Source of the DNA: Octopus bimaculoides
Taxonomy: Eukaryota
Reading direction: 5' to 3'
Length of the DNA stretch: 37,141 nucleotides
Assembly (NCBI RefSeq): GCF_001194135.2
Contig: NC_068981.1
Location: 80,211,807-80,248,947, forward strand
The position numbers and the translations under genes are program-made. Below are positions 16,611-37,025 of this stretch, in pieces. The notes below the pieces were generated by a model that worked only from the letters and a program-made list of their open reading frames with translations, was not told the DNA's origin and made no database searches. Every line of letters starts with the position of its first letter. Positions within the stretch are counted from its first letter, which is position 1.

Positions 16611-17762
16611 AAACTTGGTAATAGATCTGACCTAGCATTATCAGTCAATTGTACTAGTAATGGCTGACTTGTATGGTAATAGGAGAACCATCTAAAGTAG
16701 CAGCTTTACTCTGCCACTTCTAATAAAGAGTGGTTTTATTGTATGTGGACCGGAGAGAAAGACATTGTGTGTGTGTGGCTATAAGAGAAAAGTTTACTGT
16801 TTTATATACAGGGAGGGAGATAGTTATAGATATTGAGTGGGGGGCAATATTAAATCACATTAGATCAGTGGTTCCCAACCTTTTTCAGCCCAGGGACCAT
16901 TTTTTACTTGAAAAAATTTCTCGGGACCATTTCTACTTTTACTTTATGCTGTTCTATTTTCACATTAAAATACTTAATTAGAAGACAAAATAGTCTATTT
17001 ACACTTTTAAATTTATTTTAGAAAACAAAAGATAAAATTTAAAATTTATTTTAGTAAACAAAGATAAACACAAGATATCAAAATCATTTTTCATAAAGTC
17101 GTTAATTTTTAGTCCATTCAGTTAGTGACTAGCTTGATATTGGTGTTTCTGACACAAGATATCATAATCGATTTTAATAAACTCATTTAGTCTAAGTCTG
17201 ATAGTTCCTCAGCTGTTGACATCTAATTTATTTCTTTTTCTACTTAAAATATCTACAACAGCTGAATATGCAGATTCCACCATCCATGTGGTAGGGAAAA
17301 AAATGATGTTTGCTTCTACATATCGAAAAATGTTTGGGTGTGATTCCTTTATCGATATATAGGCAAAGACAGCTTCTTTTTCAACTCTTCTTCTCAGTTT
17401 CATATTCTCTTTCAAATCCAACAACATTTCAGCCAACTCAAAATTTTCATCTCCTGGCTCATAATTTTCTAGGTCTACAAACCAGAGTGGATAATCCATC
17501 TTTAATAAATCATTGTATCTTCTTTTGTCTGCATGAAGACCTTCAAGATGCATGCAGCAATGCATTCTGATGTAGGAATAGTGGTGTTAAAATTTCAAAA
17601 TGATGCCAAATTTTTTTTTTTAAACTGTTTTTTCCAAAATTTTAATTTCCCCATATACCCTTTATCTTCTGAGAACAGGTGACCAAATCTGATTTTCTAC
17701 CTTGCAGGTCTAAGTTAAGCAGATTCACTGTTTTTAAAATATCACTCAGGTAGAATATTTTT

Positions 17763-17997
17763 CAGTTTTGTATTTAAGAGATGAGGAATTATGTACATTA
17801 TTTACATTTGACAGATATTTGTCCTCATCTTGTTTGTTGTTAACACAACATTTCGGCTGATATACCCTCCAGCCTTCATCAGGTGTCTTGGGGAAATTTC
17901 AAACCTGGGTTCTCATTCCTAAGGTACCTTAGGAATGAGAAATGTTGTGTCAACAACAAACAAGATGAGGACAAATATCCGTCAAATGTAAATAATA
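17763..17997 (-). mobile_element. Copy B of the hammerhead element, inserted in the Buster transposase
   Basis: 12-bp TSD TAGAATATTTTT at 17751-17762 and 17998-18009. Minus-strand hammerhead at 17842-17887. 32-bp perfect palindrome TTCTCATTCCTAAGGTACCTTAGGAATGAGAA at the inversion junction. Confidence 0.88.
17842..17887 (-). ncRNA. Minimal hammerhead ribozyme, core intact, stem III ACGT changed to ATGT
   Basis: Minus strand reads GACAC CTGATGA A GGCTG gagggtatat CAGCC GAAA TGTT GTGTT. Confidence 0.65.
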
Positions 17998-19501
17998 TAG
18001 AATATTTTTGATTTAAACTGAGAAAGTCTTTCCAAAATTTTCTTAGCTGTATCAGCTTGCTTCTTGGAGTTGTAATGAGTCATCTGACTCTTGAACATGA
18101 GAAAGTTGATTAATGGTTCCCACAAATTCACTAGTCTTTCAAGCCTCAGGCCTTTTCACAACCATCTTACATCTGTGTGAAGCAATAGGGTTTTAAAATC
18201 TTCATCTTCACAGAATTGCATAAAAAATCTATTATTCACTGAGTTTGATTTGACAAAGTTGTTTGCATGTATGGCAGTGTTGAGTGCTTCTTCCATGTGT
18301 CCTCCAATATTCTTAACCTATTGCTGTCTGTGGATAATGCGATGTATATCAAAAATGTGAGGAGCAACTGATTTCATTCTAGAAACAAAGCCTTTCACTT
18401 TTCCAGTCATGGCTGCAGCTCCATCTGATGCAATGTCGATCAAGTTAGTCAATGGAATATTTTTATCATTAAAATACTGCATTACTTCATTGAATATATC
18501 TTCTCCATTAGTAGTTTCAGGCAAACTTTTAATGAATAACATTTCTTCCCTTATATCATCTTCATGGACAAATCTGACATAGACCAGAAGGATAGCTTGG
18601 TTATGAATTGTGTTATCATCAACCTGGATAGAAAAATTTGTCTTTTGGAGAATTTCCACAATCTTCTCAACAAAATTAGATGTTTCATCCTGTCTTCTTA
18701 TAATTGTGTTATTTGAAATGTACTCAGAGTAGATGCAGCACCTTTTCCCAGAACTTCATTTGCACAAGCTATTATAGCAGGCTTCACAAGTTTCTCACCA
18801 TAAATCTGAGGTGCTGCAACCTTGGCAATAATTTCAGAGACCAAATAACTTGGTTTGAGTGTCTTTGCTTTTTCAGTATTTATCTTCTTTACAAAGTCAG
18901 GTAGTTTGATTGGTTGTATTTTCTTTTTATTCTCAAAATATTCCCTACCTTTATCAACAGATAATGGATGCCTTAATTTCTGGTGCTGTTCCAGCTTAAC
19001 TTTTTTTATGGAATGATTTGTCATGATGGCATCACATTCAAGACATAAGTTTTGTGTCTACAGATACAAAACCAAATATGATAAAATCTTCTTAGTTATT
19101 CAGTTTTGCCATTTTAGCAGTTGGTTCAGATATTATTACAACTGATCTTTAAAAAAATAAAAATAAATACTTTATTTCTATAAATTAAAAGTATTAAATT
19201 TATTATTAAACAATATTGTGTAGTGATCTATTAAAAATATCAAATTTATTATGAAACTGTTGTGATTGTAAAATTTAAATTATGTAATTCTTGATTGTAA
19301 TATATTATTGATTATATATTATACATTATTGATTCTTATGGAATAATTATTGAATTTTGTTTTCTTATTATTATTCTGTCTTCATATAAATTATTATTAA
19401 ATAACAGTGTCTTTATTATTGAACAATATTGTGTAGATCTGAAATGGCTTCAAATTTTTTATGGCTACCAATTCTCTGGGGACCACCGGTANNNNNNNNN
19501 N

Positions 19502-19595
19502 TATTATTATTCAGGTCACTGCCTGGAATCAAACTCGGAATCTTGGGGTTTGTAGCTACTAAGTGCAAGATTCCAAGTTCGATTCCAGGCAGTGA

Positions 19596-19637
<42 letters not shown>

Positions 19638-19811
19638 CAACATCAAAAAATACCTTAGGAATGAGAACCTATGTTCAAAATTTCCCCAAGACACCTGATG
19701 AAGGCTGGAAGGTATATCAGCCGAAACGTTGTGTTAACAAACAAGATGAGGACAAATGTCCGTCAAATGTAAATAATGTACATAATTCCTCATCTCTTAA
19801 ATATAGAAGTG
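19502..19811 (+). mobile_element. Copy C of the same element, with fold-back 5' end abutting an assembly gap
   Basis: Inverted 3' half of the tRNA-like head at 19502-19555, fold-back centre GTAGCTAC 19552-19559, then direct B-box (AGTTCGATTCC), (AAT)n, intact hammerhead and the shared 3' terminus. Confidence 0.85.
19690..19735 (+). ncRNA. Minimal type I hammerhead ribozyme (intact core)
   Basis: Stem I GACAC(19690-94)/GTGTT(19731-35). Core CTGATGA 19695-19701 plus an extra A at 19702. Stem II GGCTG/CAGCC with a 10-nt loop. GAAA 19723-26. Loopless palindromic stem III ACGT. GUU triplet, predicted cut after 19730. Confidence 0.8.
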
Positions 19812-21745: not shown

Positions 21746-22306
21746 CTGAAAACAGATAAAACAGAATTGACTAATATTAATCTTACTAATACAAATTTTA
21801 TTGAACTCTGATAGAAATGAAAATCAAACTCAATGCAGGAAGAATTTCAATCCAGATCAATAAACAATAAGAGTAGGCCCTCTAATACTAAGATAAGCAC
21901 CTCTTGGCTAGAATGCGAATGCTAGCATAAGAAGATTTTTTACCCAACAGACAAAAAGATCCCTGAACTTGGCAGATTTTTCCCATGAAAAATATAGTGA
22001 ACTCAGCACAGCAAGCCAACACAAGTATTTGTCAATACCACACAGATAGCAATACTAATGAAATAGATTTGTATCAACCTGTTCATTTTGTTCTTTCTTT
22101 TTACTTTTAGCCCAGGGAAGAAAGCTCAGCAAGTCCTCTCAAACTGAAAGAAGTTAAATATTTGGGCCATGAACATAAAGCTATACCAGTTAGGAAATTG
22201 TCAAGTATTATAGTCAAACCACAGATCTACTTTTTTGTCTGGGCACAAAGTTGTTTAGTTAGTATTGAACTACAGCAGCCCCCATTATTGTAATATATAT
22301 TATGTA

Positions 22307-22646
22307 CATTATTTACATTCAACGGATATTTGTCTTCATCTTGTTTGTTATTAACACAACAATTTCCCACGGGCATATGGCATAGTGGTTAAGAGCGTGG
22401 GTTACTAACCCCAAGATTTCGAGTTCGATTCCAAGTAGTGACATGAACAATAATAATAATAACATCGAAAAATACCTTAGGAATGAGAACCCAAGTTCAA
22501 AATTTCCCCCAAGACACCCGAAGAAGGCTGGAGGGTATATCAGCCGAAACGTTGTGTTAATAACAAACAAGATGAGGACAAATATCCGTTGAATGTAAAT
22601 TATGTAAATAATGCACATAATTCCTCATCTCTTAAATATAGAACTG
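22307..22646 (+). mobile_element. Copy D (most complete) of the tRNA-headed, hammerhead-containing Penelope-like non-autonomous element
   Basis: Parts in order: inverted 5' arm 22307-22360; A-box TGGCATAGTGG 22378-22388; B-box GAGTTCGATTCC 22421-22432; (AAT)n; hammerhead-like motif 22513-22558 with core CCGAAGA (U4C); 3' end ...CTCTTAAATATAGAACTG. Flanked by the direct repeat TAATAT(AT)ATTATGTA at 22291-22306 and 22647-22660. Confidence 0.85.
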
Positions 22647-23219
22647 TAATATATTATGTAGTTTAAAGGGTTTCACACCTGAAAGGACATCCAAATATAA
22701 CACAAGAAATGAAAGTCACCTGAAAATAATGGAGTTTTACCCTCCCTTTTAATGGTTTAGAAGAGGAAAGATAGTACCCATAACCATTTTCATGGCTTCT
22801 GAGAATATTGGGAAAAAAGCACTTCTCATAGTTAGCCATAGTATTAGGTTGGTAACTAAGTTCCCACTGTTTCTTTAAATTTAAATTTTTTAAAAGGTTT
22901 AATAAAAAATAACAACTAATTAATCAATAATGTATTCACCCTTGTTTACAACTTCTTCCCAATGTTCAACAAGATTTTCAATACCTCGTTGGTAGAAATC
23001 CTTGCACATTATAAGATGTGACTAAAAGGATTAGCGTTAGGAAGGACATCTGGCCATAACACTGACATCTCATTTGAACAGATATATTTACAAAATTACA
23101 TAAGAATATCTTGAAATGCTAAAGAGTAAATCTATAATAAATGGCAAGTTTGTGTGTTTGTTACTTTAACTCCTCCAAGACTATCCAACAGACCTTGATG
23201 AAACTTGACATGTGTGGTG

Positions 23220-23769: not shown

Positions 23770-24522
23770 GTACTTCAGCTAGTTTATTCAATAAAATCAC
23801 CATTGGCTTCAACCACGGCCTCCAGACGACTTTGGAATCTCCTGCAACTCTTCTGGATGGTCTCCTTGTTTAAGTTGGTGAATGCTGCCATAATCTTTGC
23901 CTTCAGTTCATCTTTGGTGTTACAAGGAGTTTTGTTGGTATCTCGCTCAACATAATAATCAAGAGGGTTGCAGTCTGAGGAGTTAGGTGGCCAGATGTTA
24001 GGGGTGATGTGGTCGCAGAAATTGTCTGACTGCCATGACTGGGTACTCCTGCTTGTGTGGCATGATGCATAGTCCTGTTGTCTGACATAGGGTCTTCCAA
24101 CAGCCAACTTCTTGACCCAGAGCAACACTACCTCCTCCAGGTACTTGATGTAGGCCTCCATGTTGAGTCTGAGGCTGTGTGGGAAGATGAATAGAGGCAT
24201 AACGTCACCATCACTAGTGATCACTCCAAACACCATGATGTTTGATTTTTATCACTCTTGGTACATGTTTTGGGAGCATGGCAAACATTCAGATTGACAC
24301 CCAAACACTCTGAAATGTTTGTAATCGAGCTTCCGGCACGAATGCCAAGCAGTACAATATGTCATTTCCAAATTTCTGGCAGAGTGAATTGCTTCATGGT
24401 GCTGTTTTTCTCACAGTCACTGCTCAACTGACCCTACTATCCTGTGTAGTCAACAAAATCAAACACAAACGATGCACATATGCAGAATTAGAAATATAAA
24501 ATGGCAACAATTTACCCATCAC

Positions 24523-29047: not shown

Positions 29048-29555
29048 TTAAATTTTTACAAACCTTTTTTTTTTCATCAATATGTTGGTTCATTTATATT
29101 TTTACTATAAATATGTGTGTATGGACACAGGGGTGGCAGAATGATTAAAAAGTTAGTTTCTCAACAATTACAATATTCCAAGTTCCATCAAGCTGTGCAA
29201 CACTTTAGGTCGTTGTTTGTGTTTTGGGTTTGTTTGTTTGTTTTTTTTACTATAGCTTTGAGTGAAACTCAGCCAATGGAAACTGCTTGAAATCCTTCTA
29301 TGTTAGCTGTATTTGAGGATTACATTAAGTATAATTCAATGAGGTATGGAATTCATTTGACTGAAAAACTGGAACAAGATTGAGACAAGACCCATCACTC
29401 ACATATTTTTTGTTGTTGCTGTTGAATGTATTTGCCAGCTCTGGTCATCCAGTTTACTTTCATTCATAATCTACCTCAAACTACACAACCCAGTGTGTTC
29501 TTTTGTAATTAAGATGTTATGGTATGTGATTTAAGAGATATAGGTACTATATTTT

Positions 29556-29897
29556 GTGGCACATGGCTCGGTGGTTAGAGCATCGGGCTCGTAATCATAT
29601 GGTAGTGAGTTCGATTTCCAGAGTGGGCTGTGTGTTGTGTTCTTGAGCAAGACACTTTATTTCATATTGCTCCAGTTCACTCACCTGTAGAAATGAGTTA
29701 GTGTCACTGGTGCCAAGCTGTATCAGCTTTTCCCTTTCCCTTGGATAACATTGGTGGCATGGAGAGTGGAGGCTGGTATGCATAGGCAGCTGTAGGTCTT
29801 CCATAAACAAACTTGCCTGGACTTGTGCCTCAGAGGTTAACTTTCTAGGTGCAATCCCATGGTCATTCATGATTGAAGGGGGTCTTTACCCTTTACC
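29556..29897 (+). mobile_element. tRNA-derived CORE-like SINE with a different tail
   Basis: A-box TGGCTCGGTGG, B-box GAGTTCGATTTCC, central TTGAGCAAGACACTTTATTTCA...CAGTTCACTCACCTG, ends in TTTACCC repeats. Confidence 0.8.
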
Positions 29898-31896
29898 CTA
29901 TTCTACTGGTTAAGCAACTGTGTAAATGCTTCCTTGTCTCATACACATTATTTGAGAAAAAGAACTGATATGTATTGCATGTACAGGAGTGTATCTGTGA
30001 TTAGAGAAGGCATTTGGAGGAGTGATGTATGTGATTTGTTGGGGTGTAAGTGTACGAGTATTGAAGTTTATAGTGGTTTTAAGTTAACGGGTGTGTGGTG
30101 CTGGTGCATGTGTGTAATCATTAAGGTATATGAGGAAGGCATGGATGTGTGGATGTGGAAGCAGGCACAAGTGTGAGGTAAAAAGGAAGGCAAGAGGAAT
30201 ATGGAGGGTATGATAGAAGTGCATGCAAGGGTACAAATTTGAGATGCTGTTAACATGGAAGGAGTTATGAACAAATGAAGTGAGAGAGAGAAATGGTAAG
30301 AGTTCAGGGACAGAAGAGAAGTTACACAAAAATGAATTAGAAAACAAAATACTGGTGAAAACATACAAGCAGTTTGTATGTTCATGCATGTGTTTGTTGA
30401 CTTATGTCTGAATATTTGAGGGTGTGTACACACATAAACACAAACAAACAAACAAAAATTACTATCATATACTGAATGAACTACTTCATTGGTAACTGTA
30501 GTTCACTGATACCAGTTCTATCTGGCTTTAACTTGGCCAGTTTTCAAAGGATAATATTGAATAGTTTATCTATCTGTTGAAAGGGTAGTAGTACAGTTGA
30601 CACTGATTGAATAGACATCATAGATCATTGTTAGGTCCAGATCAGTTGGTTATAAAATAATAATAGTATTTTTTTGCCTCCATCACTCACAGACATGAAA
30701 TAAATAAAGCATGTATGGATTATATTAAATTTATACTTTGCATATCTACTAGAAACCCAGCCTTGCTCTGATTTAGTACCATCATTGCTTATACCTAATT
30801 CTGGCTGTGGCTACAAACAATATTTTGGAAAGATTTTTTGAAATAGCTACATGTCAGAAAATTATAAATAAAGCTTTGATATCTGAAATATAGAAGTTTT
30901 ATGGATAGTTTTTATGTTTAACATTAAATAGCAATAGAAAGACAGAAGTGGTGGTGTCCTAGATTAAATGACATGCAATATTTACTTATGTCTCCTTTGA
31001 GTTGAAACCCTGCTTGTGTTTCATCTCTCTGGGCTTGTAAAATAATATACTGGAGTTGATTCAATCAACTATATCCCTTTTCTGCCAGTGTGGGAAATGA
31101 ATATTTAATACGGCAGAGTGTATTATAATACTATTAATAATATCAATTCTTGTTTGAATATTAAATTATGACACATTAGACACAGCAGGTGATATAGCAT
31201 ATCCATCCTATACATATGGAGTAGAGATTTTTGACAGCTGTTAAAATACTGGTTACTAAAAGCTGAATAAATGTGAAACAGCTTTGTGAATATGTGTTGC
31301 ATCTCAGCTCATATGTATTGAGTTAAAATGTACTGTAGGCAGTGGTATAGCAAGGGTTCTCAGCATTGGTGGGAGTGGGGGGCTAAGACACCTTTGGCAC
31401 CACCACCCCACTTTAATTAACAGGCATAATAGGCCAGAGGAAATTTTGTACTCCTTCACATCTGTATCAGGGAAAGGGATGCCCCTGCTCCCCCTCTTGT
31501 TACAGCTCTAACTATGTGTCCTGTTGTGTATTTGGGACGGACACTTAATTCCATGTAGTTAAATCACCTTGTCTTTGAGAATAGAGGCTATGTTATCTCT
31601 GATAGATTCCAGGAGGAAATTTCTCTCTCATCTTTTTAGTATTGTTAAAGTAGATATGTGTACCTGTTTTTGTGAATACCCACTGATACTCTATATAGAG
31701 TACCTACTGGACTCTATATAAAGACATTTACATTCATTTGTAATACTGACAATGATCAGTTTGTGAGGAAATATTAATTAATTTGGTAACTTTGGTAAAG
31801 CAATATTCCATGAAACAACACTACTTTTAGTCAGTTTATTAGTTTCCTGACCAAATATTCTCAAAAGCACTTGCTTGGTATTTAGTGATAATTTAA

Positions 31897-35864: not shown

Positions 35865-37025
35865 GCACCATTGGGAGAATGGCTTCATGACTTTCTGAAG
35901 GATAGAAGTCAGGTGGTAGTAGCCAATGGAGCCACCTCCAATGACATGCAAATAGTGAGCTGTGTTCCGCAAGGCACAGTTTTGGGACCACTACTGTTCA
36001 TAATGGCCCTCTCAGACATGCCCTCAGCTACACAGAGAGCCACGAGCACAAGTTATGCAGATGATACAAAAGTCTCACAGGTAATACAGAACCCTGAAGA
36101 CACTATGCACCTGCAATGTGAGCTGGATGAAATATACAAGTGGGCTGAAAAGAATAACATGCAGTTTAATGCTGAAAAGTTTCAAGCCTTGTGCTATCAG
36201 CATGCAAAACTAAATGCAATACCCATTAAATACCCGGAGGGATTGCAACCCAGAGGTACAGTCAGTGTGAGACCTGGGCATTTACATGAGTAATGATGCA
36301 TCCTTTCATATGCATGTTGCTAAATTAGCAATGAAATGCAGGCAACTAACCAGATGGATTCTTAGAACTTTTAGAACAAGAAATCAGGAAACCATGCTGG
36401 TCCTCTGGAGGACACTTGTCCTAAGCCACTTTGACTATTGCTCTCAGCTGTAGTCACCAACCAGTGTCAAATTAATCTCAGAACTTGAGGCAATCCAACG
36501 AAGCTACACGAAGAAGATAGCCTCTATGCAACATATAAGCTATTGGAAAAGACTCAAAAGATTAAGACTCTATTTCTTAGAGCGCAGGTGAGAAAGATAT
36601 GCCATAATATACATCTGGAAGATCCTCGAAGGACTTGTCCCAAACTTTGGCATTGAAAGTTACACAAATACTAGAACTGGGCACCACTGCATAGTGCCAA
36701 GGACTCCAAATTTGCCATCAAGATGTAGGACAAGATACTGCAATAGCTTGGGCTTCAGAGGTCCACAGCTCTTCAATATCCTCCCGAAGGACCTGAGAGA
36801 CCTGCATGGGGTGGATGTAGGTAAAGCTGGACCTCTTCCTGTCAAGTGCCTCAGATGAACTAATTTCATGCCAGGAAATGCAGATTAGGGTAGCTGCATC
36901 ACACTCTCTCATGCACCAAATGTCAATTCCTGAAAAGCATTCGTGAAGTAAAATTATGTAGCAACACCAAATGGCGGTGCCCCAGCATGGCCACAGCTCA
37001 AGAGTTGAAACTAGATGAAATGAAA
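35865..37025 (+). pseudogene. CR1/L2-clade LINE, 3' RT fragment
   Basis: EWLHDFLKDRSQVVVANG, CVPQGTVLGPLLF, SYADDTKV, WILRTFRTR, HFDYCSQL, ELEAIQR, ERR*ERYAIIYIWKIL; frameshifts and stops present. Confidence 0.9.

Follow-up and report, generated by a model that had tools for sequence, protein, structure and literature searches.

A 37,141-nt stretch of the Octopus bimaculoides genome (contig NC_068981.1, positions 80,211,807 to 80,248,947; hereafter the window) carries four copies, designated A to D, of a ~280-nt repeat unit. On sequence comparison we consider it probable that this unit represents a short, non-coding SINE (short interspersed nuclear element) family whose 3′ module stems from a Penelope-like element (PLE) rather than from a long interspersed nuclear element (LINE), and which is copied by PLE machinery and transcribed by RNA polymerase III (Pol III). 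The existence of the family, including its head, is near certain. In sense order, the unit consists of a tRNA-like head, an (AAT)n stretch, a body, a minimal type-I hammerhead ribozyme and a 3′ stem-loop. The parts following (AAT)n are AACAUCAAAAAAUACCUUAGGAAUGAGAACC...CCCCAAG, the hammerhead (i.e., GACAC-CUGAUGA-A-GGCUGG-loop-UCAGCC-GAAAC-GUU/GUGUU), AACAACAAACAAGAUGAGGACAAAUAUCCGUCAAAUGUAAAUAAUG and a terminal segment of ~33 nt, UACAUAAUUCCUCAUCUCUUAAAUAUAGAACUG (referred to as the tail). The ribozyme is located downstream of the head, ~85 nt from the 3′ end of the unit, and a 3′ module of ~125 nt runs from ACACCUGAUGA to ...UAUAGAACUG. The unit has the traits of a SINE, being short (~280 nt), non-coding, set between target-site duplications (TSDs) of 12–18 bp and built of arms truncated at various points. 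No poly(A) or simple-repeat 3′ end was found on it, and self-BLAST revealed no similarity between the tail and any other sequence in the window. The (AAT)n stretch is an internal part of the unit, of variable length, and not a target site.

Self-BLAST of the segment 22307–22646 yielded four loci spanning 10.1 kb, in line with the initial annotation, which had counted four copies in ~10 kb; the 20-mer ATACCTTAGGAATGAGAACC from the body moreover occurs five times in the window at no more than three mismatches (chance expectation of 0.01). The boundaries of A, B and D were set from their TSDs, placing copy A at 12561–12810 (TSD AATTATAAAAGTA, 13 bp, at 12548–12560 and 12811–12823), copy B at 17763–17997 (TSD TAGAATATTTTT, 12 bp, at 17751–17762 and 17998–18009) and copy D at 22307–22644 (TSD TGTAATATAT(AT)TATGTA, 16–18 bp), so that the coordinates given initially (22307–22646) delimit one whole insertion. 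Exact matches of at least 12 nt were absent from ~3000 random pairs of flanks with comparable spacing. Copy C (19502–19811) lacks its left end, which was lost to a run of 10 N at 19492–19501. The four copies are 88–92% identical to one another, and because of this divergence they can be taken as old and independent insertions; they appear to be dead relics. A 9-nt internal duplication (i.e., GUAAAUAAU repeated) is present in A (12765–12782) and D (22594–22611) and absent from B and C, which suggests two subfamilies. The window as a whole is AT-rich (~35% GC) and contains four runs of N. The individual parts of the insertions are listed in Table 1.

Table 1. Anatomy of the four insertions (coordinates refer to the window)
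Feature	Position	Strand	Remarks
Copy A, long inverted arm	12561–12726	−	From (AAT)n to ...AAAUAAUG; tail-less; damaged hammerhead
Copy A, short forward arm	12727–12810	+	From AACAAGAUGAGG to the 3′ end; with tail
Copy B, primary arm	17763–17926	−	5′-truncated at ACCTTAGG; intact hammerhead (core 17882–17851); with tail
Copy B, secondary arm	17927–17997	+	Snap-back of ~16 nt, then GAAAUGUUGUG...AAAUAAUA; tail-less
Copy C, inverted arm	19502–19554	−	3′ half of the head (B box) and start of (AAT)n; ends in the N gap 19492–19501
Copy C, forward arm	19555–19811	+	Starts mid-head; (AAT)n, body, intact hammerhead (core 19695–19726), tail
Copy D, left TSD TGTAATATATATTATGTA	22289–22306		Equals 22645–22660 except for a 2-nt AT indel; exact shared core of 12 nt
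Copy D, inverted secondary arm	22307–22360	−	Reverse complement of GUUGUGUU...GUAAAUAAUG; lacks the last ~33 nt; inner end at the hammerhead
Copy D, 10-nt junction AATTTCCCAC from inverted arm to head	22361–22370	+	May be a 5′ leader or the arm continuing to GAAA
Copy D, tRNA-derived head	22371–22443	+	A box 22378–22388; B box 22422–22432
Copy D, spacer and internal (AAT)4 microsatellite	22444–22463	+	From alignment; length differs among copies
Copy D, body with ATACCTTAGGAATGAGAACC	22464–22512	+	From 20-mer search and alignment
Copy D, hammerhead remnant GACAC-CCGAAGA-A-GGCUGG...UCAGCC-GAAAC-GUU/GUGUU	22513–22558	+	
Copy D, 3′ region with 5′ strand of the terminal stem, AGAUGAGGA	22559–22611	+	
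Copy D, ~33-nt tail with 3′ strand of the terminal stem, UCCUCAUCU	22612–22644	+	At one end only of each insertion
Copy D, right TSD	22645–22660		Direct-repeat match to the left flank

All four insertions are composed of two 5′-truncated arms arranged head-to-head, both of which begin in the unit's 3′ region. One arm extends as far as the true 3′ end while the other stops ~33 nt short of it, at ...GUAAAUAAUG(UAC), and the end point of this tail-less arm is identical in A, B and D as well as in two loci from outside the window (L013 and L021). The combination of an inverted 5′-truncated arm with a one-sided tail was found in the four window copies and in L007, L011, L013, L014, L016 and L021. 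The same scar has been described for PLEs, in which an inverted 5′-truncated copy abuts the main copy and a tail of 30–40 bp is present at only one end, and it was reported to be absent from LINE target-primed reverse transcription (Craig et al. 2021, PMC8557442). PLE inverted structures are further known to break short-read assemblies (PMC8557442), and the N gap of copy C, situated exactly at the outer end of its inverted arm, fits this reported difficulty. The likeness to PLE insertions (PMC8557442) thus extends to 5′ truncation, the abutting inverted 5′-truncated copy, the tail at one end and the assembly gap, and as far as insertion structure can tell it supports PLE-like integration. A partial tandem copy forming a pseudo-long terminal repeat (pLTR) was found in none of the window copies.

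The tail strand UCCUCAUCU can pair with AGAUGAGGA, ~55 nt upstream, in a terminal stem of 8–9 bp (22571–22579 with 22621–22629 in copy D), and this stem is present at the equivalent positions in A, B and C. In an alignment of 15 sequences 88% of the cells are paired, vs. 33–58% when the partners are slid. The changes observed in the stem are a GC-to-AU exchange in one lineage (i.e., a family from the second genome described below) and U-A to U-G changes; since this amounts to one evolutionary event, the comparative support for the stem is modest. The tail-less arms lack its 3′ strand. We regard the stem as a candidate recognition structure for the enzyme that copies the unit.

The hammerhead was identified with a descriptor that combined the core and the [C/U]GUH motif with a minimum of 4 bp in both stem II and helix I. 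Full matches were obtained only in B (17882–17851, minus strand) and C (19695–19726), and in 0 of 300 dinucleotide-shuffled windows. Likewise, the core CUGANGA...GAAA with a GUH cleavage triplet is present in B and C and not in A or D: in copy A helix II is mutated and 3 nt are deleted, whereas in copy D the CUGAUGA box reads CCGAAGA, and its ribozyme is presumed to be inactive because of the U4-to-C change. The earlier description of a Penelope-type hammerhead end has therefore to be corrected in that an intact core is restricted to B and C. Helix I comprises 5 bp (GACAC/GUGUU), helix II is formed by GGCUGG...UCAGCC, its 5′ end bearing an unpaired A, and both helices are recovered in the minimum-free-energy fold of the monomer. 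In place of the hairpin or loop of helix III, which is absent, the motif carries the palindrome AACGUU, which could pair as helix III only between two molecules. Across 16 sequences from three families, 79.5% of the cells are paired, vs. 21–50% with the partners slid, and the covariation score was reached by 1 of 500 shuffles; one pair of helix II is UA in eight of these sequences and CG in four.

These features correspond to those of the minimal hammerheads in PLE pLTRs, which possess an unpaired nucleotide 5′ of stem II, a helix I of 4–5 bp and a dimer design (Cervera & de la Pena 2014, PMC4209133). The octopus motif shares with them the CUGAUGA...GAAA core, the 5-bp helix I, the unpaired nucleotide, the AACGUU palindrome and the implied action as a dimer, and it is alike in its arrangement, since PLE minimal hammerheads often occur singly or as opposite-strand pairs 100–700 bp apart (PMC4209133). 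It differs from the schistosome families in the length of helix II (5–6 bp vs. 7–8 bp; PMC4209133), and from PLE pLTR hammerheads in general in being joined to a tRNA-like head with no reverse transcriptase (RT) or endonuclease (EN) open reading frame (ORF) nearby. Taken together, the comparison supports a minimal, dimer-type hammerhead as found in PLEs. As a further observation on the ribozyme, the short arm starts at (G)AAA(C/U)GUUGUG in three, perhaps four, of ~10 composite insertions (window 17927–17945 and 22355–22370; L021 10016–10030; L011 ~845–862), i.e., at the 3′ base of helix II, ~8 nt upstream of the predicted cleavage site. A possible cause is stalling or template switching of the reverse transcriptase at the stem.

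At the other end of the unit, copy D shows an A box (TGGCATAGTGG) at positions 8–18 and a B box (AGTTCGATTCC) at positions 52–62, counted from GGGCATA, the places at which tRNA genes canonically carry these boxes. An A/B pair at tRNA spacing occurs once in the window, in copy D, and in 0 of 300 shuffles. Copy C lacks the A box: its forward arm starts in the anticodon region, and the same 3′ head half stands before it in inverted orientation; alignment therefore upholds the previously claimed junction of C and D for the 3′ half of the head, (AAT)n, the body, the hammerhead and the 3′ end, and limits its A box to D. Both C and L016 retain the B box, and B-box-like motifs are retained in three families from two genomes.

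Several lines of sequence evidence indicate that the head belongs to the family, as had been proposed initially. Inverted arm, head and tail of copy D all lie within its one TSD pair, with no separate TSD found around the head; the head–(AAT)n–body junction recurs in C, D, L011, L015 and L016; and profile searches over 156 kb detected heads of the D type only beside tails. Moreover, the inversion point lies inside the head in copy C and in both arms of L016, so the RNA that was copied included the head. D and L011, two copies of independent origin, both begin at GGGCATATGGC, upstream of which L011 carries AATTACCGAA, a string similar to the junction AATTTCCCAC of D. Since its boxes keep their places while its acceptor and T stems are degraded and cloverleaf and covariance-model tests do not recognise it, the head is best described as derived from a tRNA gene in sequence rather than as a tRNA. 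Transcription of the source copies by Pol III is, on these features, a likely proposition. Other tRNA-derived SINE copies, belonging to other families, are present in the window at 29552–29900 (plus strand) and ~5058–5125 (minus strand); the head of the former (29557–29631) is tRNA-Thr-like according to ARAGORN at relaxed thresholds.

Outside the window, the sense-frame peptide of the unit was compared with 1.84 billion representative proteins, which returned 50 short ORFs that were all translated related ribozyme units; the peptide PEEGW...PKRC corresponds to CCUGAAGAAGG...CCGAAACGUUG. The 51-aa UniRef entry A0A0L8FV75_OCTBM (P0055) from Octopus bimaculoides is 86% identical to the peptide of the unit consensus, and this "uncharacterized protein" is almost certainly a spurious gene model obtained by translating a repeat copy in its sense frame. 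That the sense frame is open is due to conserved nucleotides and not to a gene, and the UniRef match places the family in Octopus bimaculoides. Of the nucleotide relatives, L016 (a Logan assembly of run SRR11869394, with the same locus in four sister runs) consists of two head-to-head arms that both include the head, followed by (AAT)2, the body, the ribozyme and the 3′ region, while L011 copies the layout of D (i.e., an inverted arm, ~14 nt and then GGGCATATGGC). In a second genome, introduced below, L014 comprises an inverted arm, head, linker, ribozyme and tail, and L013 a full-length inverted copy without tail and a short forward arm with it.

This second genome (ENA ERZ21867824, 35% GC) harbours two additional families whose ribozyme and tail are homologous to those of the octopus unit. 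These are 65–72% identical to the octopus unit over 130–200 nt, with higher identity in the last 50 nt, and both have a tRNA-like head upstream. In L009 (10085–10338) and L021 (10018–10380), the head is followed by at least two tandem minimal-hammerhead units of 129–132 nt. Scans with exact 21-mers gave four chance matches in unrelated contigs of the metagenome collection and none in the viral collection, and a protein search with the antisense ORF that spans copy D gave no match. No copies of the unit were encountered in 20-kb samples around relatives of a mariner remnant of the window (L005 and L006, the latter being 45% N).

From these data the following course of events can be proposed. 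The A and B boxes of source copies would direct Pol III transcription that runs out into the flanking DNA. A PLE enzyme with RT and GIY-YIG domains, encoded elsewhere in the genome, would then recognise the module of 3′ stem-loop and hammerhead, cut both strands of the target and prime cDNA synthesis from each, after which the two cDNAs would be joined in the middle of the insertion. Priming on two strands would yield inverted arms, a one-sided tail and TSDs of variable length. Lacking its own helix III (cf. the AACGUU palindrome), the hammerhead should not allow a single RNA to cut itself. Restriction of cleavage to dimers would protect full-length transcripts, in which promoter head and 3′ recognition end would no longer be joined after a cut at GUU/G, and the role of the ribozyme may be structural or lie in the processing of multimers. 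Dependence on a PLE, taken separately, appears likely from the sequences.

A number of observations weigh against this proposal. An ORF for a PLE RT or GIY-YIG enzyme was found neither in the window nor in any locus retrieved from outside it, a Pfam search with all ORFs of at least 55 aa from approximately the first 24.5 kb of the window gave no match, and the only RT pieces, at 35871–36293 and in L021, look LINE-like (FVDFSKAFD and YADD contexts). The Rfam hammerhead families did not match the ribozyme even at E ≤ 10; across 11.5 kb and two pieces of ~350 nt, Rfam at gathering thresholds and at E ≤ 10 reported only spurious miRNA-like hairpins from the inverted arms. Such a miss is expected for a motif without helix III, and since the Rfam models do not score it, the hammerhead call rests on the descriptor and on comparative pairing. 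The head was not recognised as a tRNA by ARAGORN, at default or relaxed (70%) thresholds, nor by the Rfam tRNA model even at E ≤ 10 on 361 nt, and it is complete in a single window copy, D being the only one with an A box. Between head and 3′ end, runs of four or more T are indeed lacking on D's sense strand, as initially remarked, but this is weak evidence for Pol III, because TTTT is also absent from ~47% of the shuffles of this A-rich sequence; of eight near-full-length sense strands seven are free of TTTT, and one outside copy contains it. The absence of TTTT is hence compatible with Pol III and says little. Finally, the heads of the octopus and the second-genome families are only marginally similar (E=0.001), and the design common to the two genomes may be convergent instead of inherited.

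Some of these observations would suit a non-autonomous PLE derivative (retrozyme-like or solo-pLTR-like) made by RNA polymerase II or by read-through, with the head as the one-time capture of a SINE fragment through template switching, carried along and devoid of a promoter role. The failure of the head to fold as a tRNA and the weakness of the TTTT argument speak for this alternative, as does the head of D, which is closer to that of the window SINE at 29552–29630 (70% identity over 70 nt) than to the second-genome heads. In addition, retrotransposition of other RNAs in trans has been reported for PLE RT (PMC8557442), and non-autonomous PLE derivatives lacking a Pol III head are known (i.e., Chlamys MRC1 and the vertebrate non-LTR retrozymes). 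We nevertheless hold it to be rather unlikely, given that the A and B boxes of D stand exactly at the canonical tRNA positions, that B-box-like motifs were kept in three families of two genomes, and that D and L011 share the start GGGCATATGGC, as a defined transcription start predicts. Should the unit be an ordinary LINE-dependent tRNA-SINE, its tail would come from a LINE, its arms from twin priming and the hammerhead would be a passenger. Twin priming by L1-type elements indeed yields inversions, a LINE RT fragment is present in the window (35871–36293, RVT_1) and the PLE itself was not found. Yet twin priming inverts one RNA once, whereas here both arms start in the 3′ region of the RNA; in A, B, D, L013 and L021 alike, the 33-nt tail is one-sided and recurs at the same position, it is unlike anything else in the window, the 3′ end has no poly(A) or simple repeat, and the ribozyme is of the PLE minimal design, all of which makes dependence on a LINE improbable.

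Terminal inverted repeats of 54–170 nt flanked by direct repeats might also recall a DNA-level foldback element or a transposon of the miniature inverted-repeat type. Such an origin is very improbable, as the arm lengths and inner breakpoints differ in every copy, the ends are unequal with a one-sided tail, the TSDs vary (12, 13 and 16–18 bp) where a transposase gives a fixed length, and the structure equals the published PLE scar (PMC8557442). The position of (AAT)n exactly between head and body, together with the preference of PLEs with an N-terminal EN for microsatellite targets (PMC8557442), would be in keeping with a chance juxtaposition, in which a truncated PLE end was inserted into or beside an (AAT)n-tailed tRNA-SINE. 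This scenario is already contradicted by the data, and we give it hardly any credence: the same junction recurs in C, D, L011, L015 and L016, the TSD of D encloses both parts with no separate TSD around the head, and the inversion points of C and L016 fall within the head.

With regard to known systems, the nearest precedent is SMalpha/Sjalpha of schistosomes (Ferbeyre 1998, Laha 2000). As far as the summary in PMC6765202 goes, these are likewise short, dispersed, non-coding units that combine a Pol III-type promoter with a type-I hammerhead and for which RT is thought to be supplied in trans. In the same summary, SMalpha has a canonical, efficient hammerhead and usually forms tandem arrays, in contrast to the single octopus units with their minimal PLE-type motif that lacks a helix III of its own. 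The order of parts also differs: hammerhead cleavage in SMalpha/Sjalpha is summarised as leaving the cleaved RNA with its promoter at the 3′ end (PMC6765202), whereas the octopus ribozyme lies downstream of the head, in copies with PLE-type inverted arms. Unlike PLEs proper, the octopus element measures 0.28 kb, is non-coding and has no pLTR tandem, tandems being confined to L009 and L021 of the second genome.

[quoted passage not shown] The octopus unit resembles them in being non-autonomous, hammerhead-bearing, AT-rich and, by our proposal, PLE-dependent. The earlier label "retrozyme" is not supported for the octopus copies, in which no tandem array was found within the window (each arm holds one sense ribozyme, and the arms are on opposite strands). 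The 129–132-nt tandem units of the second genome are retrozyme-like and could release monomers, but are shorter than the 170–400 nt of animal retrozymes. No tRNA-like head was found in the main text of PMC7229834 or of the preprint 10.64898/2026.07.22.740005. With classical tRNA-SINEs (SINE2; cf. the octopus OK, OR1 and OR2 elements and the Ceph-SINEs) the unit shares an A/B-box head, a body, a tail borrowed from a retroelement, TSDs and 5′ truncation. It departs from SINE2 by its tail, which is not LINE-like, by the lack of an A-rich or simple-repeat 3′ end and by its inverted-pair insertions. Identity with the Ceph-SINEs was considered and rejected, the Ceph-domain deriving from RTE/CORE. 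In the open-access literature, a scope that leaves Repbase and Dfam outside, topical searches found neither for cephalopods nor elsewhere a described SINE that combines a tRNA head and a PLE-type ribozyme tail.

The window holds remnants of further mobile elements. A C-terminal remnant of a Tc1/mariner transposase is located at 23784–24236 (minus strand); relatives of it carry Pfam PF13358, its DNA is 82% identical to a copy on O. bimaculoides chromosome CM046625.1, and protein relatives are present in O. bimaculoides and O. vulgaris. Copy B was inserted between fragments of a series of three ORF fragments at 17209–19024 (minus strand), which we take to resemble a hAT/ZBED-type transposase-derived gene and for which Pfam gave no match. 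The LINE-type RT fragment at 35871–36293 lies on the plus strand, matches Pfam RVT_1 (E=6e-12), has a YADD motif and is not PLE-like.

SINEs are textbook parasites of LINEs, and a SINE that uses Penelope machinery would widen this rule; it would also help to explain why invertebrate genomes contain thousands of "orphan" minimal hammerheads. Somewhat more tentatively, at least three families in two genomes may represent a distinct class of SINEs with a PLE as autonomous partner, defined by a Pol III head joined to a PLE hammerhead/stem-loop module. If so, they would be the first clear examples of such a class, with a one-unit module in octopus and a multi-unit module in the second genome, and would link schistosome SMalpha, animal retrozymes and PLE pLTRs in one continuum. 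In genome annotations, such copies are likely labelled "unclassified SINE" or "unknown". PLE integration has no in vitro system yet (PMC8557442), and these small, numerous copies would provide natural snapshots of it in their two-strand-primed arms, fixed tail-less end and ribozyme breakpoints, the GAAA breakpoints of the arms then amounting to a natural record of PLE reverse transcription on both target strands.

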